A stretch of DNA of 64,000 bases from Oikopleura dioica. Taxonomy: Eukaryota; Animalia; Chordata. Of the stretch, positions 3,123 through 57,636 are shown piece after piece. Made by a program: the position numbers and the translations under genes. How positions within the stretch are numbered: position 1 is the first letter of the stretch; each line of letters begins with the position of its first letter. A model generated the notes under the pieces. The model searched no databases. It saw only the letters and a list, made by a program, of their open reading frames with translations, and was not told the DNA's origin. The DNA is taken from assembly GCA_907165135.1 (NCBI GenBank), contig OU015567.1, forward strand, positions 11,842,001 to 11,906,000, written 5' to 3'.

Positions 3123-6100
3123 TTACTCGATCTCTTTAACTCCTCGCTTGATCCAGGCCAACCATTCTTCTTTGGTGTGTTGCGGCGCTGTGACATGCAT
3201 CAAATCGGCAGCCTTTTCAAACGCGACTCTGAATGAATGAATGCCATTTGAATACTTTAAAATATTAAATCACCTCAGCTTGTTATCTGATTCCTCAGAG
3301 CTAGACTCGGAGTCAGAAGTCGAGGGTGCGACAACTGTGTTGTCGATTTGTTCGGAAGTTGTATCATCATTCTCATCAAGATCGTCCATCTATAGAACTG
3401 TAATCTCATAAAGTGCATTGATTAGTACCTTTTCGGCGTCGATCAGCGGCTGAGCATCCTTTTCTACGGCATTCGATTGGATGGATTGCCGATCTTTTTT
3501 CATGAACGATCCAGGGAACTTCTCGATAATGTCCACCCCATCGACGAGAATGAGCGCGTCAGCTGTCACTGGGCCAGTCGCGTTGACATTCTGGATCGTT
3601 TTTGGCATTCCTTCCTTGCTGTAGATCTAAAAAAGAGTCGAATTAATGGGTGTAGGGCGGCCACGTTCTGCAGCAGAACGGCGTTCTGCAAATGCAGAAT
3701 GGCGTTCTGTAAATACAGAACGGCGTTCTGCACTCAAAAAATATATGCGCTTCGCGCCTGTCTTAAAGGAAATCTCAGAATTTCTAAAGTCAGGAGTTAC
3801 TATTTCAGCATAGCTGAATGCGTTAAAACTGAAAAGAATCAAGTTACATCGTTAAAAAAAATCCTTATGCAGAACGCCATTCTGCATTTGCAGAACGCCG
3901 TTCTGTATTTGCAGAACGCCGTTCTGGCAGAACGTGGCCGCCCGTCACCCGAATTAATGATTGCCTCATTCGGTTTTCTTACCTCATCGAGAAAGTTGTT
4001 AACAGCTTGTTCGTCGCCATCGAATTGCCAGCCAGACTGAACGAAAAAGTACATCATCGGCTCTTTGCATTGCTCTTCCGTGATCTTTCGACAGGACTGC
4101 TCGTAGTTTTCATTCTTGATCTCTGTCTCGTTTCCATAGTCGACGAAGAAGACTGTGAAGATGTGATCTTTCTTCTCCATGACACAGGCTCTGTACCAAG
4201 ATTTATCTTCGTCCCACTGCGCGATGATGAAATCACCTTCTTCCGGCAATTCGAGCAGTCGGTCTTGGTGAGGCGCGCATTTCTCAAGTTCCTCCTGAAG
4301 CACGTCAAGGCGTTCTTCGGGATCACCTCGAGCGATAAGGAAGCCATTTTTGTCGAAAGCCTGGATTTGAGTATCCTCGTCTCCTCGGAGCGGAATCGTA
4401 AGCCTTTGATCAGAGGCCTCTTCTAAAGCTGGGCTCTCGGGTGTGTTCTTTTTGGGCTCTTCTTCTTCAGCTAATGAAACTCGGGTAACTCCTGTTTCCT
4501 CGTTGCATGAAACAGTTGTCGGTTGAATAACAAAGTCCGGATTTTCATCAAGGCTTTGGTTGAGGTCCTCGAAGTACTTGTCTTCCGCGTCTGCGAAACT
4601 CAACATCGAGAAGGCCGCCGGACGGGCATATTCTGCGGACACTTCCCAAAGATCTTCAGCTTTCTTCACAGAACTGGAGTAGCCGAAATCTATCCAGAGC
4701 AGCACAAACTCACCCCCGCTATTGATATCAATAATCTGAGCTCGTGAGTTCCCGTCCGGGGTTGGGGAGATGCAGAAGTCGCCGATTTTGGGATTCATGA
4801 TCTGCTTTTTGTTCTTGATCGCATCGAGGGACTCGGTGAAGCTTTCAGTCCAGTCAAGGTCAGAATCGGCCACGCTTCCAATCACATAGTATTGGCCGTT
4901 CATTCTTACAACGTCCGAAACAAGAAGCGACTGAGACGGGCCCGAGTAACTCTCGTAACGGATGAGGTTCACTCGGTTCGATCCTTCTTCCGCCATTTCT
5001 TCTACCTGCTCGGTGGCTTTCTCGCTGCCGCAGCTCTCGGAAATAGGCTCTTCATCCTCCGAAATAGATGGGAGAGAGTGTTTTTCAACAAGAGGAACTT
5101 CTTCCTCGTAAATTTCTGTTTTTGGGATGACCTCGGGCTCTTCCGAAGTTTCCCCTTCGAACATTCCGGAAAATTTATCCATAAGAACGATGTCTTCTCC
5201 ATCAATGAGAACTTTCGCGGAGGCGGAATTCGGGCCAGATTGAACAACGCCCTCGATCTCTTTCTTGACTTTGTTGTTCTCATAAATATCATCAAGAAAC
5301 TGGTTCACAGTTTCTTCTTCTCCATTGAATGGGCATCTGATATTGACCCAGAAGAAAAACATCGGTTCTCTCGCCTGCGCTTCGTCGATCTTTCGACAGG
5401 AATCCCCAACGCACGACTTGGTAATCTCTGCGCAATTTCCATAGTCTGTGAAAAAGACGAGAATGTTGTTTTCATCTTCGCTCTGGACGAAAGCACGATA
5501 CCATCGGTCGTCTTCCTCCCATTTCGCAATGATGAAATCGCCAATAGCTGGGGGATGCGAAAGCTGTTGCAATTTGAGGGCTTCAGATTGAAGACGATCG
5601 TCGAGACCTTCCAACTCGCTTGATTCGTCCACACGTGCGACAAGGAAGCCTTTTTCTGCACAAAACTCCTGAATGCCCACGACGAGTTTGTCTGAGCTTG
5701 GAATCTGAATAACAACTTTTGGATCAGAATCTCCAGGGGCGGATTCAGAAGGTGCGTCCTTAGTGTTTTCCACGTTCTTCGATGCTGTCGGGTCCTCAAG
5801 CGAAGAATTCTCTTCGGATTTTTCAACATCGCTCTCATCTGCAACGGACGCTATCTCGTCCGCCTGATTAGACTCTTCCTCAACAGACTGCTCCAATTCA
5901 AGATTATTGATCTTGCTGTTGTTTGATTCTTCAAACTAAAAAAAGATTCCTTTATCTATACTTAGGAGTAAAAAACCTTGTCAGAGTCGAGAACTGGCTT
6001 GGAATCTTCTTCTTGTTCCTCCTCGTCGTCCTTTGAGGAAGTAGACATACCCTCCGATTTGAACTTTCCAGGGAACATATCCAGAATATCCACTCCATCA

Positions 6101-9100
6101 ACAAGAATAAGAGCGCTCGCCGAGATTGGTCCGGTCACTTTTATTGCCTGCAACTTTTTCGCCATTTCAGCTTTGTCGTAAATCTAAATATCATTATTTT
6201 AAAATATCAAAAGAATAATGGTCGTTTACCTCTTCCAAATAGGCATTCACAGCGTCTCTATCGCCATCAAATACCCAGCCAGAGTGTACCATAAAGGACA
6301 TCATCGGCTCGTCGCACTGGGTATCGAGTATCTCTCGACAAGATTTTGGGCATTTGTCATTGCTGATTTCTGCCTCGTTTCCAAAGTCAACGAAGAAAAC
6401 CTTGAAGCTGCTATCGGTTTTCTCTACGACGTAAGCCCTGTACCAGCAGTTGTCTTCGTCCCACTGCGCGATAATGAAATCGCCGACATTGGGAAGCTCA
6501 AGAAGTGGACTCTGGCTCGGTGCAGCCTCATCAAGATGAGTCTGAATTGCTGTTAATTTTTCTTCTGTATTTGTAAGAAGGACAATGAATCCTCTCTCAG
6601 GGACAAATTCCTCGATAATGACGTCCGTAGCTTCCACGGGCACTGGAATCTTGAGATCTGAGGCTTTCTCTGGGGCTTCTTCTAAAGCCGGGGTCAGAGG
6701 AGGTTTAATGTTTACAGCCTCTTTTTTCTCAGATCGAACGCGAGTTATTCCTGTTTCTTCATCACAGGAAATGAAGGCTGGTCCAATTTCAAGCTCTGGA
6801 TTTTCATCGAGGGCTTTCGTCATCTTCTCGAAGAACTCGTCATCTTCGTCTTCAAAGTCCAAGAGAGAACACGCTGCCGGACGACCGAATTCAGAAGTCA
6901 CTTCCCAAAGATTTTCAGCCCCTTTGATAGTGCTGAAGTATCCGAAATCGATCCAAAGAATCTCGAACTTCTCATCGCCAGAGATCCCCATGATCTGTCC
7001 TCGTGAAGTTCCATCGGACGTTGGAGAGATGCAGAAGTCACCAACTTTTGGAGAAGCGATCGGCTTCTTATTTGATATCGTGTCGAGGGACTCCGTGATG
7101 TTTTCTATCCAGCTAATATCAAGATCGGTCTCATTCCCAACGACGAAATATTTTCCACATTTTTGTACGATGTCTAGCACGACGAACGGCTTGTCTGGGC
7201 CCGAGTATCGCGCATACGGGATGATGTTCACCCGGCCTTCAAGACACAAGTTCTCTTTGTCTTTCTCTTCGGGCTCGTTGTCTTTTTCAATATTGGAACT
7301 GGGTTCTTCTTCTGGTACAGAAGGAAAAGAGCTTCGTTCGGAAGAAACTTCCTTTACTTCGTCTTCTGGCTTGGATAAAGACCCAACAGAGTTTTTCGGA
7401 GTGAAAGAGTTGGAAAGTTTATCAGAAAGCACGATATTTTTTCCATCGACGTAGATTGTAGCAGAGACTTTATTCGTTCCTAAACGCTCGATTTCAACCA
7501 CTTGTTTTTCAGCTGCCGGATCCTCATACAACTATAAAAAAGTTTTATTAATAATCATTACATAATTTATTATACTTCATCAAGGTAACTGCTGATCGCT
7601 CCCATATCGCCAATAAAGCGATAGCCAGTGTCCACCCAGAAGAAGCCCATCGGTTCTGCAGCCTGCTCTTTCTCAATTTCACGACAGGAGTCCGCAATGT
7701 AGGACTTCTCGATGACAGCGTTGTTGCCATAGTCGACAAAGAACACGACGAAACTGTCTTTGTCCTCGCTGACGACGCAGGCACGGTACCATCGGTCATC
7801 CTCGTCCCATTTCGCAACGATGAAATCACCAACTTCAGGCGCTCGCGAAAGTTTCTGTAATTTTTGAACCTCTGTCTGAAGACGAGCGTCGGAAACCTCG
7901 AAAGAGTCGTCCAAACGTGCGACGAGGAATCCTTTTTCTGGGCAGAACTGTGTAATATCCGCAGAGATTGATTGTGGAATTGGAATCACGAGCTTTTCAG
8001 TTTGAGCTGGAGTTACCAAGATTTTCGAGTCAACAGCTGCATCCGTGGTCGTAGACTTCTCGATGATCGTGCTACCAGTCACAGTTTCCTCTTCATATTT
8101 GGCCTCTGCTTGGTCTTTAGCCTCACTTGCCTTCGAAGAAGCGTATTCAATCGAAGAAGATACAGCGGAGTCTTGAACATTCGCATGACTGTCAGGAAGT
8201 TTTTTGTTCGCTGGCTCGACAAGAGTAATTCCAGTGACTTCGTCAAATTCAACAGGGGCGACGGTAATTTTGATGTCTTCAGTCGAATCTTCGAGTTGTT
8301 TTACTAAATCCTTGACAAACATAGAATCGTCGCTGCTGAACTTGAGCAAAGAACAAGCAGCGGGACGGCTGAACTCTTTAGCAACTTCCCAAAGATCTTC
8401 CGAATTTTTGGTAGTCGACAAGTATCCAAAATCGATCCACAGCAAAGTGAATCCTTTTTCATCGATGGTAGTTATTTGTGCTCGAGAGTTTCCATCCTCG
8501 GTCGGAGAGATACAAAAGTCGCCAACTTTTGGAGCTTCGATCACTTTTGCCTCGTCGCCCTTGATTTCGTTGAGAGTCTCGGTGAATTCGTCGATCCAAT
8601 CGTTGTCGACTTCGGGAGCATAACCGACAGCGAAGATTTGATCGCCCATGCGAGTAATGTCGCTGACGAAAAAGTCATTGCCGGCGAATCGTGTGTAGGC
8701 AATGCAGTTCAAACTGGGCTTGACGGCTGGTTCTTCGGCTTTGTCGCTTGTAGAGAATGCACCGGACTCCGAAACCACACTATTGTCGGCGGACTTGTCT
8801 CGGGGCTGTCGGATGGTCACAACTGTAATTTCGGGGTCCTCTTTGGTGGCATGGAAAAGAACATTCAAATTTTCAGTCTCTGGCGTAAGATTCTCTGGCC
8901 AGACTGCAGGTGTGCATCTTAAATATCAACTTAGTACGAAAATAGATCTATAATAATCTTTATAGGAATCATATCACACCTTCTGACAAAAGGGGCAAAC
9001 TCGCTTAGTTCTTCTGTCAGCTTGTAGGCCTTCTTGAACTGGGTCGCGTAGCCGTGATCACAAACTCGGGCAATTCGAAATTTGAGTAAACTCGAACTTT

Positions 9101-19915: not shown

Positions 19916-22900
19916 TCATCTTTGGACTTTCAAAAGAGCAGGGAATGTTTTCTTCCTCAGCCTCTCGACTTCTTGCTTGAGGACACTAATCTCGTTGTGC
20001 TGGCGCTTGACGATCTCTGCCAATTGTCGATTTCGAGCATGGTTTCGCATGATTTTACCCGTGTCGGGCATGATTTGGCCGTTCTTGATGTTGCGTTTTT
20101 CAGAAACGGCAATCAAAAGCTCTTCGATGATTCCGTCGAGATGAGCATTTTCACGAATGAGAGCTTCCTTTCGATCGCGAAGTTTTTTCGCTTCCTTATT
20201 ACGACGAGCCATTTTCGACTAAATTTATGTTAGAAATAGGTCACTCTTTGTGAGTTTACCTTGTGTTGTTCATTTTGCGCCTTCAAATTTCGATCAAGTC
20301 GCGCTAGATCTTGGTTTGTCTTATTCTGTCCGAGATTGCCAGAGAGAAGCACAGCTTGAAGTTCCCTAGTAAGTTTCAAGAGCTGAATATCCTGCGTCTT
20401 TTGGATGAGGTCGTCCTTCTCCATCTCGAGTTTGCGCCTTTCCCATTCGAGTGAGTGAATTCCCTTGAAGCATTTTATAGTAAGAAGGATGAAAATTATT
20501 GATTTACTTTTCTGAAATCGGCGGATTCGATCATGGCTTCAATTTTCGCCGTACCAAATTGTTTGATCTCAGCATTCATGTCCTCAACTGTCTCCCGATG
20601 AATAAATTGCGCTTCTGTATAATCTGAAATCAGAGCTTGAAATGATATTTTATAAGAATAAATTACCTGTGAGGAATTTGCCAGGATTGACCTCGACCTG
20701 GCCCTGCTTGAGTAAAATTTGGATGAGAAGATTTTTCGCCTTGTTTTTCATCTCCAGCTCGTGCGAATTCGATTCCGTCAGCATGTCCGACGCTTGAGCT
20801 TGAATTCTAGCGTCTTCAGAAGCACGAAGCGATAGGAAGTCTTTCATAACATTTACTTTTTGCTGATGATGTCTAAACGGAGTTTTTTACTTGTGAACTG
20901 CGTCAAATATCTTACCTCACAATAGCTTCTTTTCGCATTTTCTCTTCTCGAAGCGTAATCGTCTTTTGCCAATCTGCTTCTTCTACACCTGTTGGTGCCT
21001 CTTCTATGTTATCAAGCTCGGCCATGGTTTCATCTGGCTTTGGTCGGCGCTTGTATGCCTTGAAAAGCTGGTCGATAAAGACGTTTGACTCATCGAATTC
21101 GTTTTTGAAGGATTTTTCTGTTATCTGAAACTAAATTTGACGAGTGAAAATTGTGACAGAACTCACCTTATCATCATTAATTTTATCATCTAACTCTTCT
21201 TTAGCTGTATCGTAAAATCGCTTGAACTCATCTAAATACTTCTTTTTCTCTTTGACTGCTTCTTGAAGATCGCTGATCAGCTGTTTTATTAAGTTGTCAA
21301 TTTCTTGCGCTTCTTCGTCCCAGGTTAGTCCTCGTTGAATTCGAGCCATTCGGAGATATTCTTGGTCGACAGCCAACTGAGCAATCAATCGTTTTTGGTT
21401 GAGTTCTGAAAACTGTAAGACAAACATAAAGAACTGCGATTTTACCTTGAATAGTGAGATCAAAAGAGTGCATTCCCTCGACGATTCCCTGCTGAGTCTT
21501 TTTTGCTTCGATCTCGAGTGACTTTTTAAACTTCGTTCTCTCTTCTTCGAGAGCTGCAACTTTCTTATCGTACTCTTTAGCCTGTTTAACTTCTTCGTCG
21601 GTCCAATCAGACTCCATTTTATCTGGATCATCCATGAATGCAGGTCTTGGGACATCGATTTTGAGGACATCTTCTGATTTCACTTCCAACACGCCATCCA
21701 TCATTTCAAGCAGCGCTCGATCGCGCGCGTTATCACCTTTATTGGCTCTTCTTGCTTCTTCTAAGCGGCGTTCTTCTTCCAAAAGCGCTTGCTGTTCTTC
21801 AGTGAGTACTCGCTCGACCTCGACTTCTTCATCTTCGACTTCAAAAACGAGCTCAGTTTTCTCGCTATCGTCAAACTGCGGCTGAAGAAGCTCAAATTCG
21901 ACGCCAGTGTCATGGGAGATCTCGGTGATTCGTTCGTTCTTCTCGGCAATCTTGGCGATCTCGCTCTGTTTCTGTCGGAAAACCTGGTCAAACTGCTTGT
22001 TGAAATGCCTCTTGATCATAGTTATTCGATTTTCGATGAGAATCATTTCTGTTTTGCGGGATTCGGTATCGATAAGAGAGAACTGGCTTTCAAGCAGGTT
22101 ATCCTCCCCGATGAGCTGGTCGGTGACGGACCCATAAGGATGAATACCTGCGGTTTCTTCGTCGTCAACATTGGTGTCAGAGTTTTTGTTCTCTTTTTTC
22201 TGCACAGGTTCATTTTCTCGCTGGGCTTCTCTTTCTGTCTTTGCGTTTTCATAAATCCCAGAGAATTCTTGAGTAGTTGGCCGGATCTCAAAATTCTTGA
22301 CAGCGATCGGCATGTAAAATGCTTTGAGACATCGAGCGCCAGCTTCCATATTCTTCCAGCAATTATCACTGATCGAGTCAACTAACTTTCCGTAATCTTC
22401 GATTTTGCCGGAGATTTCTTTTCGCAACGATTCGATATCAGAGACTTCTTTCATCGCCATTTCTTCAACCTGTTCTTTATCCAGGTTGAACTCCTGGTTA
22501 TCAAGCTTCTCCAACTCGTCAGCTTCGTCATTTTCTTTCATCATTTTGTTGACAATCTGTCGCAAATCGTCGAGCTCAGAGGTGAATTCTGCTTTGATTC
22601 TTTTGTATTTTTGATCTTCGATTTCCGCAGCTATCTTCACCTGAATGGCAAACCAGTCTGGTTCGTCTGATGCCAGTTTCACATCCGAAGTATCAGCCAG
22701 GAATGGAAGATCTTTCGCTCCTTTACCAAGGGTGATTGCTTTTTGAACAAAATCGCTCTTCGCCTTTAGCTCGATCAACTCGATATTATGTTCGGAGAAG
22801 ACAAGGAGATTCTCACCATTGCGATCAAATCTCAGTTCATAAGCTTTATCTGATGAAGGCAGTTGAATCTTCTGGGTTATGTTTCGGATAAGGCTGAGTG

Positions 22901-25152
22901 AGCCAGAGCGGCATGCTTGTGCAACCCAGAAGTTATGAAATGGAGCAGCAAAGGAGATCGATGAAGTTGGCCACTGACTTAGCTGTCGTACGAATGAAAC
23001 TTCATCTGGGTAGACCTTGCCAAGAGTGAACTCGAGCTGATTAATCGTAGCAGTTTCAGAAGACACTGCCCAGCAACTCGCAACGCTACTCACGCAGCTA
23101 AGGAGCGATACCCGGGAGCAAGGTGGAATCATCACAGTTGTGGCGTTAATCGCTTTTTGCTCCAGCTCGAGGAGGTTGTTTACGTGCTTCACAAGATGCG
23201 ACTCCTTGAAAACTTCTTGCGAGATCTCGAATACAAGGAGAGCATCGATCACAGTTGAGGTCGACCCCTCGGCCAGATTGGCCAGAACAGTAAGAGGAGT
23301 GTTTGCATTTGAGGCCGAAACTGACAAGCCTTGTACCACGCCGTCGACTGGAAGATATCCCATAACATCTGGCAGGATTTTTTCAGAATTCTTCCATGTC
23401 AGCACCAAGATTTTGTCGTCGCTAGCAGACCCGACAATCAATGCTCTGTTGTAAGTGTCGACTGCGATGGATGTGAGGTTCTCCGTGAACAGCTTCTTTG
23501 ATGCCATACAGAGAAGTGTCTTGGTGTCAGGATCTACTTTCAGGGCAACTAAAGATCCACACTCAGTTCCAAGGAAGAAAAGGTTCTCTGACGCTGTTGA
23601 TGAGATTGTCAAAACCTGTGAATCGACATGAAGCACGTGACATCTTTTGAGCGTTGACTCGTAAAGCTCAAGCGTTTTTGAATCCCTCGAAATGACGATT
23701 CTACTATCAGAGGCGATCGCGGATGCAACTATCTTGGATGAACTCTGATAAAACTGCAGCGAAGTACTGTTATCTTCAAGCCTGATGACTTCTCGCTTTC
23801 CACAGGAGTACTCGACGAAAATATGGGTTTCAGCAATGGCATAACAGTTGGTAATATTCTGATAATTTGTTGAAGAAAGCTGCTTCAGAGTTTTAATCAT
23901 TTTTCCTTTTTGTTTTCTTGTCTTTTCTTGCCCAAGTAGCAAAATGCCATCTTCACCAATCATGACCAACTCGTCACTCTTCAACGCCATGCCTTGAATG
24001 CCATCAGAACAAGGGATGAAGTTCTCTAGAGCTAAGCTCGTCATGTTCTTGTACTCGGAGTCAGAAACGAAAAAGTCGTCATGTTCTCCATTTTGTCGGA
24101 TAGCGTAAATTTCACCGTGCGAAGTCGATAATAAGATCTTGGAGTCTTTCCAGAGCGCTGATGTTATTTCGCCATTATTTTGTTTTTCAATTTCGAAAGT
24201 AAGCGGCAGCTCTTCAACGTCGTTTTCCCAAAGATTTTCGGTTCTTCGTGAAAGCAGATTTACGGATCCATCCATGATATCGCTGAAAGTCACGTTCTTC
24301 TCCGTAAGCGTGCATTTTTCCTCATCAAAGCTTTCAATGGTGAACTTAGTGATATGCTTCTTTCTCTGCATGAGAAACTGATTGTTCGCTGATGGGTTGA
24401 ATTTGAGCGCGCGAAGGTCGTCGATGATGTCGATAGGCTTTTCAATGATGATCTTTCCGGTCTTGAGGTTGGCGACTTTTAGGCAGTAGTTAGGCAAACC
24501 GGATGCGAAGACACAAAACAGTCCATCTTGGGTGACATCGGCGGCTTTTTAGGTTTTTAAATCGAAAAAAATCAAGATAAATAATGAAATTCTGTTATGT
24601 AGATGGTGAAACCTTTCCTAGAATCTCATAATCAGCTGCGTCCTCGAGTTTGGCTCCATATTCTTTTCCATTTTTGAAGAATTGGATTTCAACTTGACCA
24701 AGAGCATCCCTAGTAGTAACGCCAAGAATATCCTTTCCGTTGCCGAAAATACGGATGATATTCTTGGAACACTCGATCGAGGACTCTTTCGATCCGTCGA
24801 CATTATAAAAATGGATGTTTCTGCATGTGGCGATGACAAGATTATTGCCGAGGATTATTGATGGGATTGAGCTTGGTAGTGAGTATCCCATCCTGAAAAA
24901 ATGCTCAGCTGAGTTTGAAGGGGCTAACCAAAAAAGGTCCTAGCTGTCACGTCCTAGCTCCAGACTTACTTATTTGGATATTGAAAAAATACCGAATTTT
25001 CCAAAATTTGACTTACGTGGTGGCGCCTTATCGAATGAACTATTTTTCTCACTTAAAATCTCTGTAAACAACTGGTTGTTCTAGAAAAGTCCCATATTTT
25101 AAATAAAATTTGTTTCCTTTGAGAAAATACTCAACGCGATGCGCGTTTCCAT
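19916..25152 (-). CDS. CFAP43: Cilia- and flagella-associated protein 43 (WDR96)
   Basis: N-terminal WD-like region, then MMDGVLEVKSEDVLKIDVPRPAFM...WTDEEVKQAKEYDKKV and the C-terminal EVERLRKKTFPAL, both matching CFAP43. Start codon (25152) tentative. Confidence 0.88.
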
Positions 25153-25569: not shown

Positions 25570-28500
25570 TTAGATGAAGAACAGGGAGTCTTGGAACTTC
25601 GTGCGAACGGTGGTTCGCTTGTCGTGGGAGTTGAAGTACCCTCGGACCTTTGAGAGCTCATTTTCGAGCTGCTTGGTTCCCTTCCAGTGAACACGAGCTC
25701 GTTCAGCGACGATGGAAGCGAGTCTGACAGGGGCGCATTCCGAAGTACTGAAATAATTTTTACCTCTTTGATTTGAGAGGAGTAACTTACGCTCGGTTAG
25801 CCCGCATGGTAGCGAGAGACAGCGCGTATGTCATTTCGGACATGTTTTGGAGCTCGACGTTGTTGTCGTCGTGCAGGACCTGATAGAAGGTCGGATTTAC
25901 GGTTCCGCAGGCCGCCTGTGAAGCAAGGTGGAAACTGTAGCTATCTAAATAAAAAGTTGGTGAAAGGGTGGCGCGATTTGGACTTACCTGGAACGCCGTT
26001 TCCGTAGCCGGCGACAACTGTTCCAGCGGGGATGTTCTCACCCATTCCATCCTTGTCCTCGTCATTAACGCAGAAGTATTTCTGCTTTGAGCCTCGGACC
26101 GAGCATATGAAGGTGATGCCAGGCTGGTAAGACATGTCGATTTCGGCGAGGGCCTTGCGGATGCCTTCCATGAGCTCGTTCTTGAGAATGGCCTGGATCG
26201 CTCCTTCGCTGGCTCCTCCTCGGTAGATGATGATCCGCTCCGGCTTGACACCGTTGTTCTTCGTGATGAACTGGCCGATGAGGTGCTTGAGGGCGGCCTT
26301 GAGCGTATCCTTGTGGATGATGGCGAGACGGGGGTCTTGGTGGTGAACGTAGTTGACAAAACCAGTACCACCTTGAGTCGTGGACGCAACAAAACCCACG
26401 AGAGATGGGTCAGTCGACTCGGGCTCCGCGTGTGAGATGCTCATTCCCATGATCATTAGCGGAGTTGGTGAAGGTGGGAGAGGAACATCAATTCGCCAGT
26501 TTTCGCCGCCAAGTTTGGCGTTGAGCTAAGAGTTTCCTTTAGATATATTCATAATCTAATGAATAGTACCTTGTACCAGAGGTTTTTGAGCATCGCTTCG
26601 TCTGGCCGCATCACATTTTTCGACTTGACCATTTGAGTCAGAATGCCATTGTTAAGCTCGGCGATGGATTTGACGACTTCGTAGTCATGGCCAGAATCAG
26701 GGACGCAGACGAGCACGAATGGGAGTTCGTTGAGCGATCTGCCCTTATCAGCGTACTCGGAGACGATTCGATCGAAGTCAAAGCCCGAGTCAAGTTTGAT
26801 GTCGAGGACTGGCTCAGACTTGATTTCCACGCCCAGTTTTCTCCCGACTTCTACGAACATTCTGCAGAAGCTGTCCCAGGTCTGTCGATCTCGAATCTGG
26901 TTTCCGATGCAGATTCGTCCCCACATCGGCACCACGGCGGCCTTGTTGAAGGTGTTGACATTCCAGGTGCCGTTTCCTTCGCCCTTGGATTTTTCAACGT
27001 CCACTTGTTGGCCAGCGTTGGCAGTGATAGCCGGCATATCGAGGACTCGACCTTCAGCGCCCATCGCTTCTTTGTTGATTCGTATGCCAAAGTCTGCAAG
27101 CATTTGGTCATCGAAAAGCTCTTTTGTCTCGACGATCTCTTGAATCTTCGCTTGTCGGACTGGCGCAGCTTCTGCCGAAGCTCGGATGAGCTGAGCTTTG
27201 TCATCTGCAGAGATGACCTTAGGTTTTTGCCCCGCGAGGACGCGGCACATGTCGGCAGGGAACATCTTCTTTCCGCCGCCCCGACCACGGCCTCTTCCAC
27301 CGCCACGCCCTCGACCACGACCGCCGCCACCGGCTTTCGCAGTTGTAACGACAACAGGGAAGTTGCCATTTGGATTATAGCGGGAATATTCATCTCCAAG
27401 CCGGGTTTCTCGGCAAATTGGACCAAACCCGTCGAACTTGTAAATTTTTCCGTCCTCTCCTTAAAAACAAAGTTTTTTCAAAAATATGTCTTTGCATATT
27501 ACCTCGCACTTCGATGTGGAGGTGTTTAAGGGAATCAGCGAGTTCCTGGGAGTTCTCCGGGTCGTACGAATCACGGAGAATGTCAGCAATCGGCTTGTGC
27601 TGCATGAACATTCCATAGGCCACTATTTAAAACTTGATTCAGGAACTTTTTGATACTAAAATACTCACAGTCGAGATTAAGAGTGACTTTGGTGCCGATG
27701 CCTTTCCAGTTGGAGATCTTGGCACTCTGATGAATTCCGTGCCAGACTTCCCGGCCGCGAGGGATGATTCGACGATCAGCATCCTTGTTCGCGATTTGAC
27801 AGAAAGCAGCCCGGCCCTTTGAGATGGCGCTGAGGTAATCGTTTATAAGGATGAATATTCACTATTTTGTTAGACTTACGCTGCATGAAAAGCGGGGTTA
27901 GTTCGAAGAATGATTTCGATCGCCTGGATCACTTCGGCAGGATGTTCTCCTCCGCCCTCCATGAAATCGAAAAGAGCTCTCATCTCGACTCTTTGTTCGC
28001 ATTCTTCGAGAGTTCCTTCCGCTGTTTCCTCCTTGTCGCCAGTTGGGTAAGTGACGCGGAAACCAACTCCATTGTGGCGATCTTCGTAGACGCTTCCATT
28101 GCGATCGTCTATTTCGCGGAAGCCTCGAAGCTCCCGTGGAGAAATCAGCATCTTGTCCCCATCAAACGCGAACTTGACTCCGAAAATCTGGGACAGAGTG
28201 TTGACGATTTTCCGCTTGTTCTCCTTCTTCACGTCTGGAGCAGGCCCTCGGCTTGGACCTTTCTTGGCAGAAGCAGCGACCTTAAAGTTACGAACTGAAA
28301 ATAATTGAAATCCACTCACTTTTGCGTTGAAATGGTAGATGTAGAAGACTGCGCCCTTGTCGTTCTTGAAGTCCAGGAGATAGTTGTTCGTCTTCAGCGA
28401 GATCAGTTTTCCACGGGTGAGCTCTCCATTCATCCTGGCCACTGGAATATCCGCAGTGGTTTTCGCGATCTCTCTGGCTAAAATAATGAAGTCAGTAATT

Positions 28501-29279
28501 GATTTTAATCAATTATCTTATATAAGATTTTAATTTACCCATTTTATGTTGCTTGCGGTCCTCTTCGGTTTCGGAAAACTTAGCAATATTGGCCTTCAAG
28601 TTGAGCGCGTCAAACTTGCGAGCAAGATCAGCCTTGGCATACTCGACCTGACCATCACCAGTGTATGCTTCGCGCTTGATGTTCTGGAGGCGCTCCTCTC
28701 GTTCTTGAGCCTGAAATCTCTATTAATAGTCGCTCTTGAGCGCAAGGCGCCAACATGCGGTTATCGAAGATTCGAAATCGTCTAAAACGCTCTGGCGACT
28801 AGGCGATATCATATCGCTCTGTCTAGCCTATCGATTTCTTCCGTTTTATAACCCTTGTAGAGACGTACCTTGTCTGGGCCCTTGCCGCGACCTCCGCGCC
28901 CGCCACGACCACCGCGTTCGCCTCGACCACCACGAGGTCCTCCTCGTCCGCCACCACCACGTCGGTCACCATATCCTCGGCTGTCTCCGTGATCTGAAAA
29001 CAAAATTTGAAAATGTGAGAATTTAAATCTCAATCGAAAATTTCAATTTGAATAATTTAAGAGAATGATTAAATTTGATTAATGATTTATCGCAAACTTA
29101 CCTCGACGATCGTAGTCGCGACCACCCCCGCGATGATCCCGGTCGCGGTCCCTGTCGTAACCTCCTCTGTCTCGATCGCGGTCATAGCCGCCTCGGTCCC
29201 GGTCGCGATCGTATCCACGATCACGATCTCGTCGATCATAAGATCGATCCCGGTCGTCGTATCCCCGATCGTATCCCAT
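25570..29279 (-). CDS. AGO: AGO-clade Argonaute, predicted slicer-inactive, with RD/RGG-rich N-terminus
   Basis: L1 motif RGREVWHGIHQS. PAZ end FPADMCRVLAGQ. MID Y..VK...TQ...KLNAKLGG. PIWI KPERIIIYRGGASEG, YQPGITFI and NIPAGTVV. C-terminal SLFFI*. Exons join with GT-AG. Confidence 0.92.
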
Positions 29280-32378: not shown

Positions 32379-35815
<3,437 letters not shown>

Positions 35816-51706: not shown

Positions 51707-54700
51707 TTACTTGCTCTCAAGAGCCTTTGATCGAGCCTTGTTAACAGCGGCTTCAGCCATTTCAGCTCGCTCGTTAGCTTCGTCAAGTTCGTGCTGGACC
51801 TTTCGGAATCGGGACATGGCGGAAGAAGCAGATTCAGTGGCGTCTTCAGCGGCCTTCTTGTAGGACTTGACCTTGGAGTTGAGCTTGTCGATGCTGTCAG
51901 AAAGTCGGACAAGGTTCTTCTTGTCTTCATCGTTCGCGTAGTTGGCTTCCTTGTATTTACGCTCGAGCTTTCGCATGACCTTGGTGTTGTCGCTAGTTCG
52001 TCGCTGCTCGCTCTCGAGTTCCATTTCGATTTCTCTGCACTTGGTCTCGAGCTTCTGGACGGCCTTCTTACCACCCTTAAGAGCGACCTGTTCAGCTTCG
52101 TCAAGTCGCATCTGGAGATCTCGAAGGGAGTTCTCCTGGTTCTTCTTCATACGCTCAAGATGCTGGGACTGGTCCTGCTCCTTCTTTAGGTCTTCAGAGA
52201 GAAGGGCGGCGGTAGTGAGGGCCTTCTTAGCAGCATCCTCAGCAGATCGAGCCTCACCAATGGCTTCTTCGACTTCGGTCTTGACAGCGTTGAGCTCACC
52301 CTCGATCTTTCGCTTCTGGTTGATGAAAGCGCCGTTTTGGGTGTGGAGCATGTTAGATCGCTCGTTAGCCTCCATGAGGTCGTTTTCGGCCTGTTTTCGG
52401 GTTCGCTCGGCCTGCTCGAGTCCCTGTCGGAGCTCTTCAATTTCAGAGGTCATAAGGCCAACTCGTCGCTCAGAGACAGCAGATTGTTCTCGAAGATCTT
52501 CAGTCTGTCGCTGAGAATCATCAAGTCTCTGGTTCAAGTCCTTGAGCTGAAGGAGGAGATCCTTGGTGTTCTTCTGGGCATCCTGAGCCTGTCGGGAGGA
52601 TGTAGCCATGTTGACCTCGAGGTCATTAAGATCGGATTCCATCTTCTTTCGGGATCGGATGGCTTCACCTCGAGCTCGCATCTCATTGTCGAGAGAAGCT
52701 TGGATCTGCTCAACAGATCGTGAGGCATTTCGTCGAGCGTTGTCGATTTCTTCGTCCTTCTCAGCCAATCGTCGATCGATTTCCTGCTTGAGCTGCTGAA
52801 GTTCAACCTGGACTCGGAGAGTCTTGGCTTCTTCGGACTCAATGGCGGCCTCGGCTTCTTCAAGAGAGGACTGGATGTCCGCTCGCTCCTGGTCAGCCAT
52901 TCGCTTAGTCTTCTCAAGCTCATGAATAGTCTTGGATCCTTCTTGGAGCTGGTCGACAAGCTCCTGAGCCTCTTCAGCGAGATTCTTGTTTTCTCGTCGG
53001 ATAGCTTCAAGGTTCTCAACAGTCTCTTCAGTAGAATTCTTGAGCTTGAAGAGTTCAGTCTGCTGGTTTCGCACTTCTTTTTGAGCAAGCTCAAGTTCGA
53101 CCTGGGCTTCTTCTTGCTTCTGTTTAGCTTCTGCAAGGAGCTTATCGAAGTTTCGCTGCTTCTTGTCAAGCTGAGATGCAGCGGCGTTTGATCGTTCAAG
53201 ATCGGCGGAGAGATCTTCAACTTCACCCTGGAGTCGGGTCTTGGTCTTTTCGAGAGATCCGCATCGGCCTTGAGCGGCTTCGACCTGCTCTTCAGATTCC
53301 TGAAGTCGAGCGACGAGCTTCTTCTTAGCTTCCTCAAGTTCTTCAGTTCGCTGAATAGCATCAGTCTCGTACTTGTTTCGCCACTGGACGCACTCGTTGT
53401 TAGACTTGCTGAGATTTCGCTGAAGTTCTTGCTTGGACTCCTGCTCTTCCTCCATCTGTTCTCGGAGCATATCAGTGTCGTGTCGCTGAGACTGAAGTTG
53501 GTGAGAGAGCGAGTTCTTAGACTTGGACTCTTCATCGTGCTGTCGCTTGAGCTCATCGTGAGTTTGAGAGAGGGAGTTCTTGTTTCGAACAAGCTGAGTG
53601 TTAACAGTGTCCTTCTCTTCAATATGTCGACGATAGTCGTTGATCTCCATCTGGATTCGATTGTTATCGTTGTTGGAGTCGGAAAGTACGACGGCGCCTT
53701 CTTCAAGTTTCATCTTGAGGTCAGCGATGTTATCCTCAAGGTTGCGAGTCTGCTTTTCGTAGTTAAGCTTAGATTTGGTGAGAGACTCAACATTGACGTG
53801 GAGCTCATCGACTTCCATCTTTGCTTCGGACTTTTCCTTTTCGAGCTTCTGCTTGATTCGGTTAAGATTTTCAATCTGCTCGCCGAGAGAGGTGGTCTGA
53901 TCACCCTGCTTCTTTCGGATATTAGAAAGAGATGATTCGTGGTTAAGAGTGGCTTCCTCAAGTTCTCGTCGAACCTTGGCGGCTTCAGCGTCTCGTCGCT
54001 TGGCAATTTCGATCTGAGCTTGAGTGTTGGATCCAGCTTCTTCAAGTCGCTCAGCGAGCTCCTCAAGTTCTCTGGAAAGATCTCCTCGAGTCTTTTCAGA
54101 TCGAGCTCGTCCACCTCGCTCAGATTCGAGCTCTTCTTCGACTTCTTCGGTTCGACCCTGGAGCTCCTTGATTTTTTTCTGGAGCTGAGCGGCCATAGCC
54201 TGCTCATCCTCAAGCTTCGCGTTGAGCTGGGAGAAATCAAATTCAGACTTCTTCAAGGCTTCTTCCTGACCAGCCTTGTCATTTTCAAGATCCATAATCT
54301 GTTCTTGAGAGAGTCGAATGTCGCCTTCAAGCTTTCTCTTGGCTCGTTCAAGGTCCATTCGAGACTTTTTCTCAGCTTCGAGGCCGATTTCAAGATCATC
54401 GACCTGCTGTTCGAGTTTGCCCTTGGACTTGGTGAGATTGACGACCTTTTCTTCCTCATTTTGAAGATCTCCAAGAGTCTGCTTGTGAGCTTCTTGAAGA
54501 GCTTTCTTCTCCTTTTCAAGCTTGTGAATGGCCTCGCTAACAGAAGCAAGTTCCTCGGTAACGTTCTTGGACTTGTTCTCAGTTGCGTGCTTTTCTTTTT
54601 CAATCTTGGCAAGAGTCAGCTCAAGATCATCAATATCCTTCTTAAGTTCGGAAGATTCATCTTCGAGCTTTCGTTTCTTAGCAACAAGCTCGTTGTTCAT

Positions 54701-57636
54701 TTCTTCCTCATCTTCAAGTTTCTCCTGGAGATCTCGGATCTTTGCATCAAGCTCGATCTTAGCAGCAATGAGTTCTTCGCATCGACCCTCAGCGTCATCA
54801 AGGAGAGCGTTTTGAGTCTCAGCCTTTTGGGTCAGTTCATTTCGCTCCTGTTCGAGAGCAACAGACTGCTCCTCGAGCTCAGCTCGTCGCTTTTTCTCCT
54901 TCTCGAGCTGCTTTTTGACCTCATCATAGTTCTTTTCAAGCTCCTGCATCTTCTTGCCCTCTTCGGCTTGGGAGATAAGAGGCTTGATTTTGTAGATGAT
55001 CTTCATCCATTCCCAGTCCTTCAAGTACTGGAAGGCTCGGATATTACCCTGGATGATTTCGATCGAATCTCGTCGCTTGATCATCTCAGCGTAAGTTCGC
55101 TCAGCAAGTCGGTATCGCATGTAAGACTGGAGAGAAGTGAGAATGGCAGCAATTTTTTCATCACGCTCGTCTTCGAGATCACCAATAACACCAGCTTTGA
55201 AGAAAAGTTTAGTGTGGCCGAACTTATGCTTCTGGTCGGAAAGAGCGATTCCAGTACAAATTTCCTTAGACATGGCTTTCCAGTCACAGAACTCCTGGTC
55301 CTTCTTTGCTTCAGCGTGAAGAATGACATATCGCTTGGCAAATTCTTCGTACTGGACTCGAGAAGGGAAACCCTTTCGGCAAATACGGATACCTTCCAAC
55401 ACACCGTTACATCGAAGCTGATGGAGAACAAGATTCCAGTCCATGTGGCCGGGCTTTTTGATTTCGTTGGGGACAATGCAGCGGACAAAATGGGGCTGAG
55501 TAGATCGAAGGTTTGACATGAGTCGACCAAGGGATTCTCGGTGAAGACCGGAGACAGTCTGGAAAGAACCACCCTTTTGCCGCTTTCCACCTTTTCCTCC
55601 GCCACCCTTTTTGGCAGCTTCGGCGGCTTCTTCAGCAGAAACGTATGAGTCCCACTGAGCGAGGATACACTTGTTGGAAGATTTCCTGAAAACAAAGTTA
55701 AAATCAGTAAAAATAAAGTGATATTACTTAAAGAGACCGACGACAGAAGGGTTGAGAGGATCCTTGTTCTTGAGAAGCCAATCAGTGACGTTGTAACCGA
55801 CAGTACCGGCGTAGTGGTAAAGCTCAAAGTGAGGAGCAGGGACGTCAGCGTTCTTGTGGTTCTTGGGGTTGGGCTTGCCGATCTTGTCGTTCTTACCCAA
55901 ATGCTGCTGGAAGAGCTTGTCTCTGAAGGTCATATCAGTAGCCTTCGGGAACATGCACTCTTCTTCGAGAGTGGACATGATACCAAGAGGCTTTTCGATC
56001 AAGTCGATGGTAGCGGCCAAATCCATACCGAAATCGATCATTTCCCACTCAATACCTTCCTTCTTGTATTCTTCCTGCTCGAGAACGAACATGTGGTGGT
56101 TGAAGAACTGCTGGAGTTTCTCATTGGTGTAGTTGATGCAGAGCTGTTCGAAGGTGTTGAATTCAAAAATTTCGAAACCGGCGATATCGAGAATACCGAT
56201 GAAGAAAGATCGAGGAAGGTCAGTAGAAAGGGCTCGGTTGACGACTTCGACGAGCCATTTGAAGAGTCGATCGAAGACAGCCTTGCAGATGGCCTTCAGG
56301 GCGTAGTTGACCTGGTCAACGGTCTGACCCTTGGTCACGTAATCAGCGCCGACCTTAATTCGTGGGGTACAGAGGGCCTTGGTATATTCAGAACCAGAGA
56401 TACCCAACATGTAACCAGCAAGATCAGCAGCTTCATGTCCATCGGGTTCAGCCTGTTCTTCTCGGGGCTTCTGCTTGAACTCCATGTTGCCAGAGTGCAT
56501 CAAACCAGCAGTAATCATGTAGATACCAGCCTTCTCCTCAGCGTTGAAACCGAGAACGTCAAAGGAAGAGTCAGTAGCATCGAGTTCTTCAACATCGTTG
56601 ATAGACTTGACCTTAATCTCACCCATTGAGCAGTATTTGTAATCATAAGGGTTGTGCGTGATCTGGGTCATTTCGTTGATGTCCTTTCGGCCTTCGCAGC
56701 AGATCTGGTAGAAAATATGGAAACATCGCTCGGCCTTGAGCTGGAAGACAACTCGAGACTTTTCGAGCAGGTAGGTATCGATATCACCAGAAGCGAGTTT
56801 ACCAGTGAGACCGAAGTGAATTCGGATAAATTTACCGAATCGAGAAGAGTTATCGTTACGGGTGGTCTTAGCGTTACCGAAGGCCTCCATAGCAGGGTTG
56901 GCAGCGACAATCTGATCTTCGAGGGTTCCACCTCCCTTGAGAGCTGGAGCACCGTCGTCACCGTCTTTACCTCCAGATCCAAGGGCGGCGACAACGGCGA
57001 AGTACTGGATGACTCGCTTGGTATTGACAGTTTTACCAGCTCCGGACTCGCCGGTGATCAACATGGACTGGTTATGTCGTTCTCGCAACATATCGTTGTA
57101 GGCGTTATCGGAGATGGAGAAAATATGGGGAGGCATTTCAGACTTTCTCTTGCCCTTGTAGCAACCGACGACGTGGTTGTCGTAGACGGAGAGCCACTTG
57201 TAGGGGTTGACAGTGATACAAAAGAGACCGGAGTAGGTGTAGATCATGAACTTCTTGTATCGCTCGTCCAAGTTGTAGACCACAGCAGCCTCAGAGAGGT
57301 AGGTCATGTTGGCCAAATCCTCGAGCAACTCGTACTTTGGAGGGTTTTGCTTTTCAACCTAAAGACGGAGTAAATCAGTGTTTTTTCAAATCAACAGCTT
57401 ACCTGCTCGTCTTTAAAGTCCTTCTCCTTGTTATCATTCAATCGTCGGACCTTGGTGGTTCCGGGCTTGTCACCCTTACCGATGACGAGACCCTTGACGT
57501 AACCAGTCTCAGAGAAAGGGACCCAGACCTGCTTGCCACCCTCAAAGGGCTGGTTTCGGATCTCCAACATAGTGGTATCGGGAAGTCGGAGCCATTGAGC
57601 GGCACTACCGGCTGCCTCGGGATCCCAAAGCGACAT
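51707..57636 (-). CDS. MYH: Sarcomeric (muscle) myosin II heavy chain
   Basis: [34 protein letters not shown] and a long heptad rod. Only two coding introns (near 55686-55727 and 57359-57402). Confidence 0.97.

Follow-up and report, generated by a model that had tools for sequence, protein, structure and literature searches.

A tetrad-less Argonaute of Oikopleura dioica with a retained guide pocket and a predicted non-cleaving role

Can an Argonaute gene in which the whole slicer tetrad has been replaced encode a working protein, and if so, of what kind? The question is raised by a gene on the minus strand of the 64,000-nucleotide stretch of Oikopleura dioica DNA analysed here (the window). 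The initial annotation had drawn attention to positions 25570–26520, which correspond to exons 9–11 and encode the PIWI domain, and had proposed a guide-binding, non-cleaving and fast-evolving Argonaute of the AGO clade, similar in its logic to the nematode WAGOs.

Gene structure and transcripts

The gene contains eleven exons (Table 1) separated by introns of 39–158 nt, all of them GT..AG. With the 39-nt intron between exons 4 and 5 removed, the translation of this model is exactly identical to the annotated O. dioica product CAG5113211.1 (P0188; Oidioi.mRNA.OKI2018_I69.chr2.g7338.t1; 1024 aa), whose public label is merely that of an unnamed Piwi-domain protein. The short introns and TTTCAG acceptors are reminiscent of a worm WAGO gene; a nematode origin is rejected, since the sequencing runs that contain the sequence are of marine plankton and the product matches O. 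dioica, a planktonic larvacean tunicate.

Table 1. Features of the Argonaute gene; positions are those of the window.
Feature	Position	Strand	Evidence or remark
Whole Argonaute coding region	25570..29279	(-)	11 exons, 1024 aa plus stop codon
Exons 1–2, N-terminal tail	29102–29279 and 28869–28993 (feature listed as 28872..29279)	(-)	
Exon 3, charged linker	28539..28710	(-)	splice model
Exons 4 and 5, Argonaute N domain	28320–28477 and 27880–28280	(-)	Pfam ArgoN, E 4.9e-11
In-frame 39-nt intron between exons 4 and 5	28281–28319	(-)	no read coverage; P0188 and P0240
Exon 6, linker L1	27669..27829	(-)	both flanking introns confirmed by spliced contigs
Exon 7, start of PAZ region	27503..27622	(-)	both flanking introns confirmed by spliced contigs
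Exon 8, remainder of shortened PAZ, L2, MID and start of PIWI	26570..27459	(-)	human AGO2 alignment; Pfam ArgoL2
RG cassette AGGGGRGRGRGGGRGRGRGGG in PAZ, residues 481–501	27272..27334	(-)	insertion
Exon 9, PIWI core	25988..26525	(-)	carries K739, S764, A803 and G838
Exon 10, PIWI continued, DSYSFHLASQAACGTVNPTFYQVLHDDN	25791..25944	(-)	Pfam Piwi, 4.5e-6
Exon 11, PIWI C-terminus and stop codon	25570..25747	(-)	carries S977 and R982; ends ...SLFFI

Two departures from this model were considered and rejected. A 10-exon version retains SGFQLFSVRNFKV (13 residues) at 28281–28319; these residues are missing from the annotated product and from a Norway-lineage metatranscriptome open reading frame (P0240), in agreement with a 39-nt intron at that place. 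A frameshift, as in a pseudogene, would be read at 25945–25987, where a GT..AG intron restores the frame and the annotated protein agrees. The frame at this intron reads HPFTNF, similar to the canonical HPxxFDF, and the structure here is the same in two environmental contigs bearing related genes (L001 and L003), the first of which also has an identical exon 10 protein sequence.

The gene is transcribed and spliced, as indicated by contigs from a poly-A marine plankton metatranscriptome that are more than 99% identical to it, although at low depth and from one environmental run. Splicing is exact at introns 27460–27502, 27623–27668 and 27830–27879, and one contig spans 26324–26506, including the S764 codon, with no differences from the window. 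Absence of expression, which would have spoken against the initial annotation, is contradicted by these contigs; three raw-read RNA runs labelled O. dioica gave zero reads on the gene, a result that counts as no test.

Catalytic centre, guide pocket and fold

The catalytic positions were placed by phmmer comparison with the sequences of solved structures and by a 62-sequence alignment (A1) limited to residues 150–1024. Exon 9 (25989–26525) matches human AGO2 residues 567–736 (E 1e-21, PDB sequences), with GMSISH aligned to GADVTH, RLAII to RQEII and YRGGASEG to YRDGVSEG, such that D597 is replaced by S (S764; codon 26439–26441), E637 by A (A803; codon 26322–26324) and D669 by G (G838; codon 26217–26219). 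Exon 11 alone is too short to give any match to PDB sequences, and the fourth position is taken from alignment A1, where APVRLASIVAERA is aligned to APAYYAHLVAFRA and H807 is replaced by S (S977; codon 25714–25716). The protein therefore lacks the DEDH/DEDD tetrad of slicer-competent Argonautes and carries S764, A803, G838 and S977 instead, and the two alignments between them confirm every replacement named in the initial annotation.

Slicing requires each of the two aspartates and the histidine, and in human AGO2 a single mutation at any of these positions abolishes it; because these residues are replaced here, the protein is predicted to be unable to cut. No alternative conserved carboxylate is seen in the alignment beside strands beta-1 or beta-4, and the proposal of a non-cleaving protein is further favoured by the near-fixed replacements in its relatives described below.

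The residues expected to anchor the 5′ phosphate of the guide are retained throughout. Human AGO2 Y529, K533, Q545, N551, K566, K570 and R812 correspond to Y698, K702, Q714, N720, K735, K739 and R982 of the window protein, the first five of them encoded by exon 8, which matches human AGO2 338–564 with an E value of 4.5e-16. The initial annotation had listed only Y, K, Q and K of the MID pocket, and the alignments to AGO2 add N, a further K and R. Guide binding is thus a well-founded prediction from the intact pocket together with the complete Argonaute fold of the model.

Exon-by-exon Pfam comparison identifies ArgoN (4.9e-11), ArgoL2 (6.4e-6) and Piwi (7.2e-33) together with a weak ArgoMid; ArgoL1 is also weak (E 0.0012; 18.9 bits, under the gathering score), and Pfam PAZ is undetected in the exons. 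Chance resemblance is not an issue, since the gene encodes a full-length Argonaute with strong ArgoN and Piwi matches. An AlphaFold model of residues 150–1024 has a mean pLDDT of 88.3 and a pTM of 0.87, and in a Foldseek search of the PDB human AGO2 ranks first (E 1e-65; TM 0.72–0.83 to full-length AGO2) with all 50 of the top 50 matches being AGO-clade structures. Pfam and the model together, the lack of a Pfam PAZ match apart, give an N-L1-PAZ-L2-MID-PIWI architecture and fold, in a protein that is ~24% identical to human AGO2 over the structural alignment. The PAZ domain is shortened, is without a Pfam match and is modelled with lower confidence (lower pLDDT), and binding of the guide 3′ end may therefore be atypical. 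Within it lies the RG cassette, of which residues 482–499 have a pLDDT below 50 and are the sole disordered part of the model.

A divergent clade under constraint

Close relatives of the gene are few. When the PIWI exon was used in an exhaustive profile search, only two representatives exceeded 50% identity, followed by generic Argonautes at 37–41%. A word search with residues 520–1024 of the annotated product recovered a Norway O. dioica protein (CBY31983.1, 71%), six unnamed marine-transcriptome clusters (42–46%) and, after these, canonical animal AGO1-type proteins at 31% identity; a word search with exon 8 (26570–27457) found only three unnamed fragments. The members assembled in this way (P0193, P0155 and P0194–P0198) are 42–71% identical to the window protein, and we found no literature describing the clade or the catalytic state of the gene.

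The aligned members have tetrads reading SAGS, SAGA, SSGS or SNGS. S-x-G-S is present in the eight aligned members, with an A at the fourth site in one, whereas the site once occupied by the glutamate finger can be A, C, N, S or H. Every aligned member keeps Y, K, Q, K, K and R in the pocket, and the position of N551 is S or T in two. Conserved motifs specific to the clade include QDPRL, YRGGASEG, GTxNPTFYQVLHDDN and APVRLAS. A further member, carried on two contigs (L003 and L004), is ~40% identical and has the same intron positions and a tetrad of S-H-S-N.

Maximum-likelihood analysis recovers the clade as a monophyletic group with support 100, joined to the rest of the tree by a stem of 1.62 changes per site. 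Assignment of the protein to the AGO rather than the PIWI clade, first proposed from an L1 motif, holds in part; the Pfam match for that linker lies under the gathering score. It is favoured by the PDB sequence matches (AGO2 at 1e-21 versus PIWI proteins at 1e-13 or weaker), by the structural matches and by a tree constrained to hold the clade with animal AGOs, whose log-likelihood is higher by 12.9 units (p-AU 0.76); a free quick tree, however, places the long clade branch beside a PIWI-like outgroup with support 76. From the constrained tree and the sequence and structure matches we regard the clade as an offshoot of the AGO branch that has diverged strongly. Species names are attached only to its O. 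dioica members, the rest being from marine plankton, and from these sources the clade probably arose in larvaceans.

Two environmental genomic contigs bear orthologs. The first (L001) is syntenic, CFAP43 being the neighbour there too, and is 83–95% identical by exon block (tblastn); the second (L002) is of the Norway lineage and is 73–79% identical. The first three tetrad sites are S, A (C in L001) and G in both, and L001, which reaches the last exon, has S at the fourth. Across two diverged lineages the dN/dS (Nei-Gojobori) is 0.075 at a dS of 0.55, and ~0.10 where dS is saturated, compared with 0.063 for the neighbouring CFAP43. These values do not fit the fast evolution that the initial annotation had supposed, the acceleration being limited to the old stem. 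Strong but ordinary constraint acts on the gene, which is neither a pseudogene nor currently fast-evolving, given its spliced transcripts, its fold, the kept replacements and the low dN/dS.

The N-terminal tail of ~100 aa consists of 30% G, 30% R and 23% D, with 20 RG/GR dipeptides and 9 RGG motifs. Tails of RD and RGG repeats opening with MGYDR are common to the full-length clade members (P0155, P0196 and P0197 begin with similar ones). The RG cassette of the PAZ domain has a narrower distribution; both L001 and the Norway lineage have it, though at a different length, and the other clade members do not.

Proposed role and comparison with known systems

The data as a whole are probably best explained by a functional O. 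dioica Argonaute that holds a guide and does not cut, belonging to a clade that diverged once and has been constrained since. The complete N-L1-PAZ-L2-MID-PIWI protein retains every residue anchoring the guide 5′ phosphate, and because the pocket is kept and the RNase-H-like DEDH centre is replaced by S, A, G and S, it would be able to bind a guide and locate a target without cutting it. The clade diverged strongly once, along its long stem, with purifying selection since. The most likely role is that of a guide-binding effector which does not cut and may silence through recruited partners instead of slicing, as do many Argonautes lacking the tetrad, which work by recruiting other factors (PMC10101689). 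The likeliest handles for such partners would be the conserved RG-rich tail and, alongside it, the second RG cassette, the O. dioica-specific GRGRGRGGGRGRGRG cassette in the shortened PAZ. RG motifs of Argonautes serve as sites of arginine methylation to which Tudor proteins bind, with a link to germ granules (PMC8421154), and the RG handles here could by analogy be methylation sites for Tudor proteins, drivers of condensate localisation, or both. A role for methylation and Tudor binding at the tail is conjecture, and few germline-type Tudor genes have been reported in O. dioica (PMC12147562). A multi-Tudor protein is encoded at 3839–8868 of the window.

Among other readings, an ordinary microRNA effector is unlikely, though it deserves the most weight; it would be a non-slicing AGO with a GW182/TNRC6-type partner, like AGO1 and AGO4, with no pathway of its own. 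Beyond the clade, the nearest matches are canonical animal AGO1-type proteins, the fold matches human AGO1–4, several positions aligned with the PIWI surface of AGO2 keep their residues, which may lie at the pockets for tryptophan (GW182), and most microRNA repression does not need slicing. Set against this, the clade is only ~31% identical to microRNA AGOs and is separated by its long stem, and the RD/RGG tail has no counterpart in the canonical animal AGOs compared, over the aligned region (A1, residues 150–1024). Somewhat less probable again is a larvacean counterpart of the WAGOs, in which lineage-specific non-cutting effectors with methyl-arginine tails have taken over genome defence; if true, this could mean transposon control, inherited silencing or silencing triggered by DNA or dsRNA. 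Larvaceans have one Piwi and few germline Tudor genes, and the genome-defence reading is set beside this observation.

The remaining alternatives have very little probability. Cleavage by way of other residues or a different metal-binding geometry might be suspected from two features, an aspartate conserved four residues ahead of where the glutamate used to be (QDPRL) and, in most members, a glutamate after the first site (HAE/HGE), but the nearby acidic residues vary in the clade (e.g. HSP in P0197), and both strand-borne aspartates and the histidine have become S, G and S, which are unable to bind metal ions; the effect of single mutations in human AGO2 noted above tells against it too (cf. 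AGO4; PMC4174435). True descent from the WAGO clade, rather than convergence, is equally improbable. Both groups lack the tetrad and are divergent from canonical AGOs, and the basal position of the clade is unsettled, but keeping it with animal AGOs gives a tree no worse than the free one, and the sole tetrad-less Caenorhabditis protein compared (P0109, YTAK) differs in its replacement residues and groups elsewhere, in a weak test that covers this one sequence. WAGOs are regarded as nematode-specific. The least probable reading, that of a decaying or neutral copy in which the tetrad was lost by drift, could appeal to the loss of all four catalytic residues, the shortened PAZ and the variable glutamate-finger site. 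It already conflicts with the data on selection and splicing, namely spliced transcripts from an intact 1024-codon frame with canonical splice sites throughout and low dN/dS at dS values from 0.55 to saturation, and the near-fixation of S, G and S across eight members as little as 42% identical, together with the high-confidence predicted fold, argues against it as well.

The preferred reading, a functional guide-holding Argonaute that does not cut, bears on small-RNA and tunicate biology chiefly. Non-cutting Argonautes are common, but constrained clades with a fixed tetrad replacement have been studied mainly in nematodes, and a chordate clade with S-x-G-S would probably be an independent example of constrained tetrad loss. 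For O. dioica, one Piwi and several proteins of the Ago subfamily have been reported (Henriet et al. 2015, PMC4402516; the accessible text does not discuss catalytic residues). A tiny genome, a single Piwi and a reduced germline Tudor set make it a testable question which Argonaute guards the genome of O. dioica. The species is kept in laboratory culture, and RNAi and DNAi tools exist for it.

The likeness to nematode WAGOs (WAGO-1, HRDE-1) that the initial annotation proposed is one of logic only, descent being neither shown nor likely. Loss of catalytic residues, a WAGO-type feature, is found in the window protein, and both it and the WAGOs have the guide 5′-end pocket; both groups are lineage-restricted and divergent and presumably recruit rather than slice (PMC10101689). 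They differ in the chordate host and in the S-x-G-S tetrad and RD/RGG tail of the clade described here. WAGOs are loaded with RdRP-made 5′-triphosphate 22G RNAs, and our searches of the literature found nothing usable on an RdRP in tunicates. Vertebrate AGO1 and AGO4 share with the window protein the AGO-clade fold, an intact MID pocket and the loss of slicing. They retain part of the tetrad, two or three residues, and are more than 80% identical to AGO2, as is generally known (see also PMC4174435), whereas the window protein has lost all four, has far lower identity to AGO2 and carries long RG-rich additions. A disordered N-terminal RGG/RG-rich tail is shared with C. elegans CSR-1a and PIWI-clade proteins (PMC8421154), but in CSR-1 and the PIWI proteins the tetrad is intact and they do slice; the second RG cassette inside PAZ is a further difference, and the sequence and structure matches, RG motifs notwithstanding, place the window protein with the AGO clade.

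A probable multi-Tudor gene and other neighbours of the Argonaute

The three long Tudor ORFs towards the left end of the window probably constitute a single multi-Tudor gene, located 17-25 kb from the Argonaute gene, whose product has RG-rich tails. The closeness of the two within the window may be a coincidence; the multi-Tudor protein is a natural candidate partner of the Argonaute. The downstream neighbour of the Argonaute is a CFAP43-type gene, and the two are also syntenic in L001, an environmental genomic contig carrying an ortholog of the Argonaute. The window further contains a full-length U2 snRNA gene, a trypsin-domain ORF and a myosin heavy-chain gene with both head and tail domains.

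Features of the window and of related contigs
Feature	Position	Strand	Match or reading
U2 snRNA gene	300-490	plus	Rfam RF00004, 156.8 bits
Three long Tudor ORFs	3839-8868	minus	Pfam Tudor, 3.5e-34, 3.6e-21, 2.7e-19
CFAP43-type cilia/flagella gene	21297-24891	minus	Pfam CC_Cfap43, 1.8e-86
Argonaute intron	25945-25987	minus	...KSKSRHPFTNF (upstream frame)
Argonaute PAZ features	27272-27334 (RG cassette), 27459-27622	minus	
Trypsin-domain ORF	32748-33974	plus	
Myosin heavy-chain gene	51707-57328	minus	
Further tetrad-less Argonaute of the clade	L003 1337-4262; L004 8068-10992		S-H-S-N

The PAZ domain and a short intron

Compared with canonical AGOs and with the other members of its clade, the O. 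dioica protein is missing approximately 13-15 residues of PAZ. This domain also contains a disordered RG cassette of lineage-dependent length: the cassette of the window protein exceeds that of L001 by 10 residues and that of the diverged Norway lineage of O. dioica by 2. Within the 43-nt intron, the upstream-frame reading is similar to the HPxxFDF segment of canonical Argonautes, which is absent from the mature O. dioica protein at this position. The intron may be the remnant of an exon stretch converted to an intron, or the likeness to HPxxFDF may have arisen by chance.

Related Argonautes elsewhere

A further tetrad-less Argonaute of the same clade is encoded on contigs L003 and L004, which derive from assembly GCA_977009715.1 (NCBI) and from a marine metagenome of the JGI; it is ~40% identical, and its intron positions are the same. 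The canonical-looking mollusc AGO1 of Candidula unifasciata (P0199, 'Protein argonaute-1') has YRGGASEG at the third catalytic site (DEGH), the local motif common to the Oikopleura clade.
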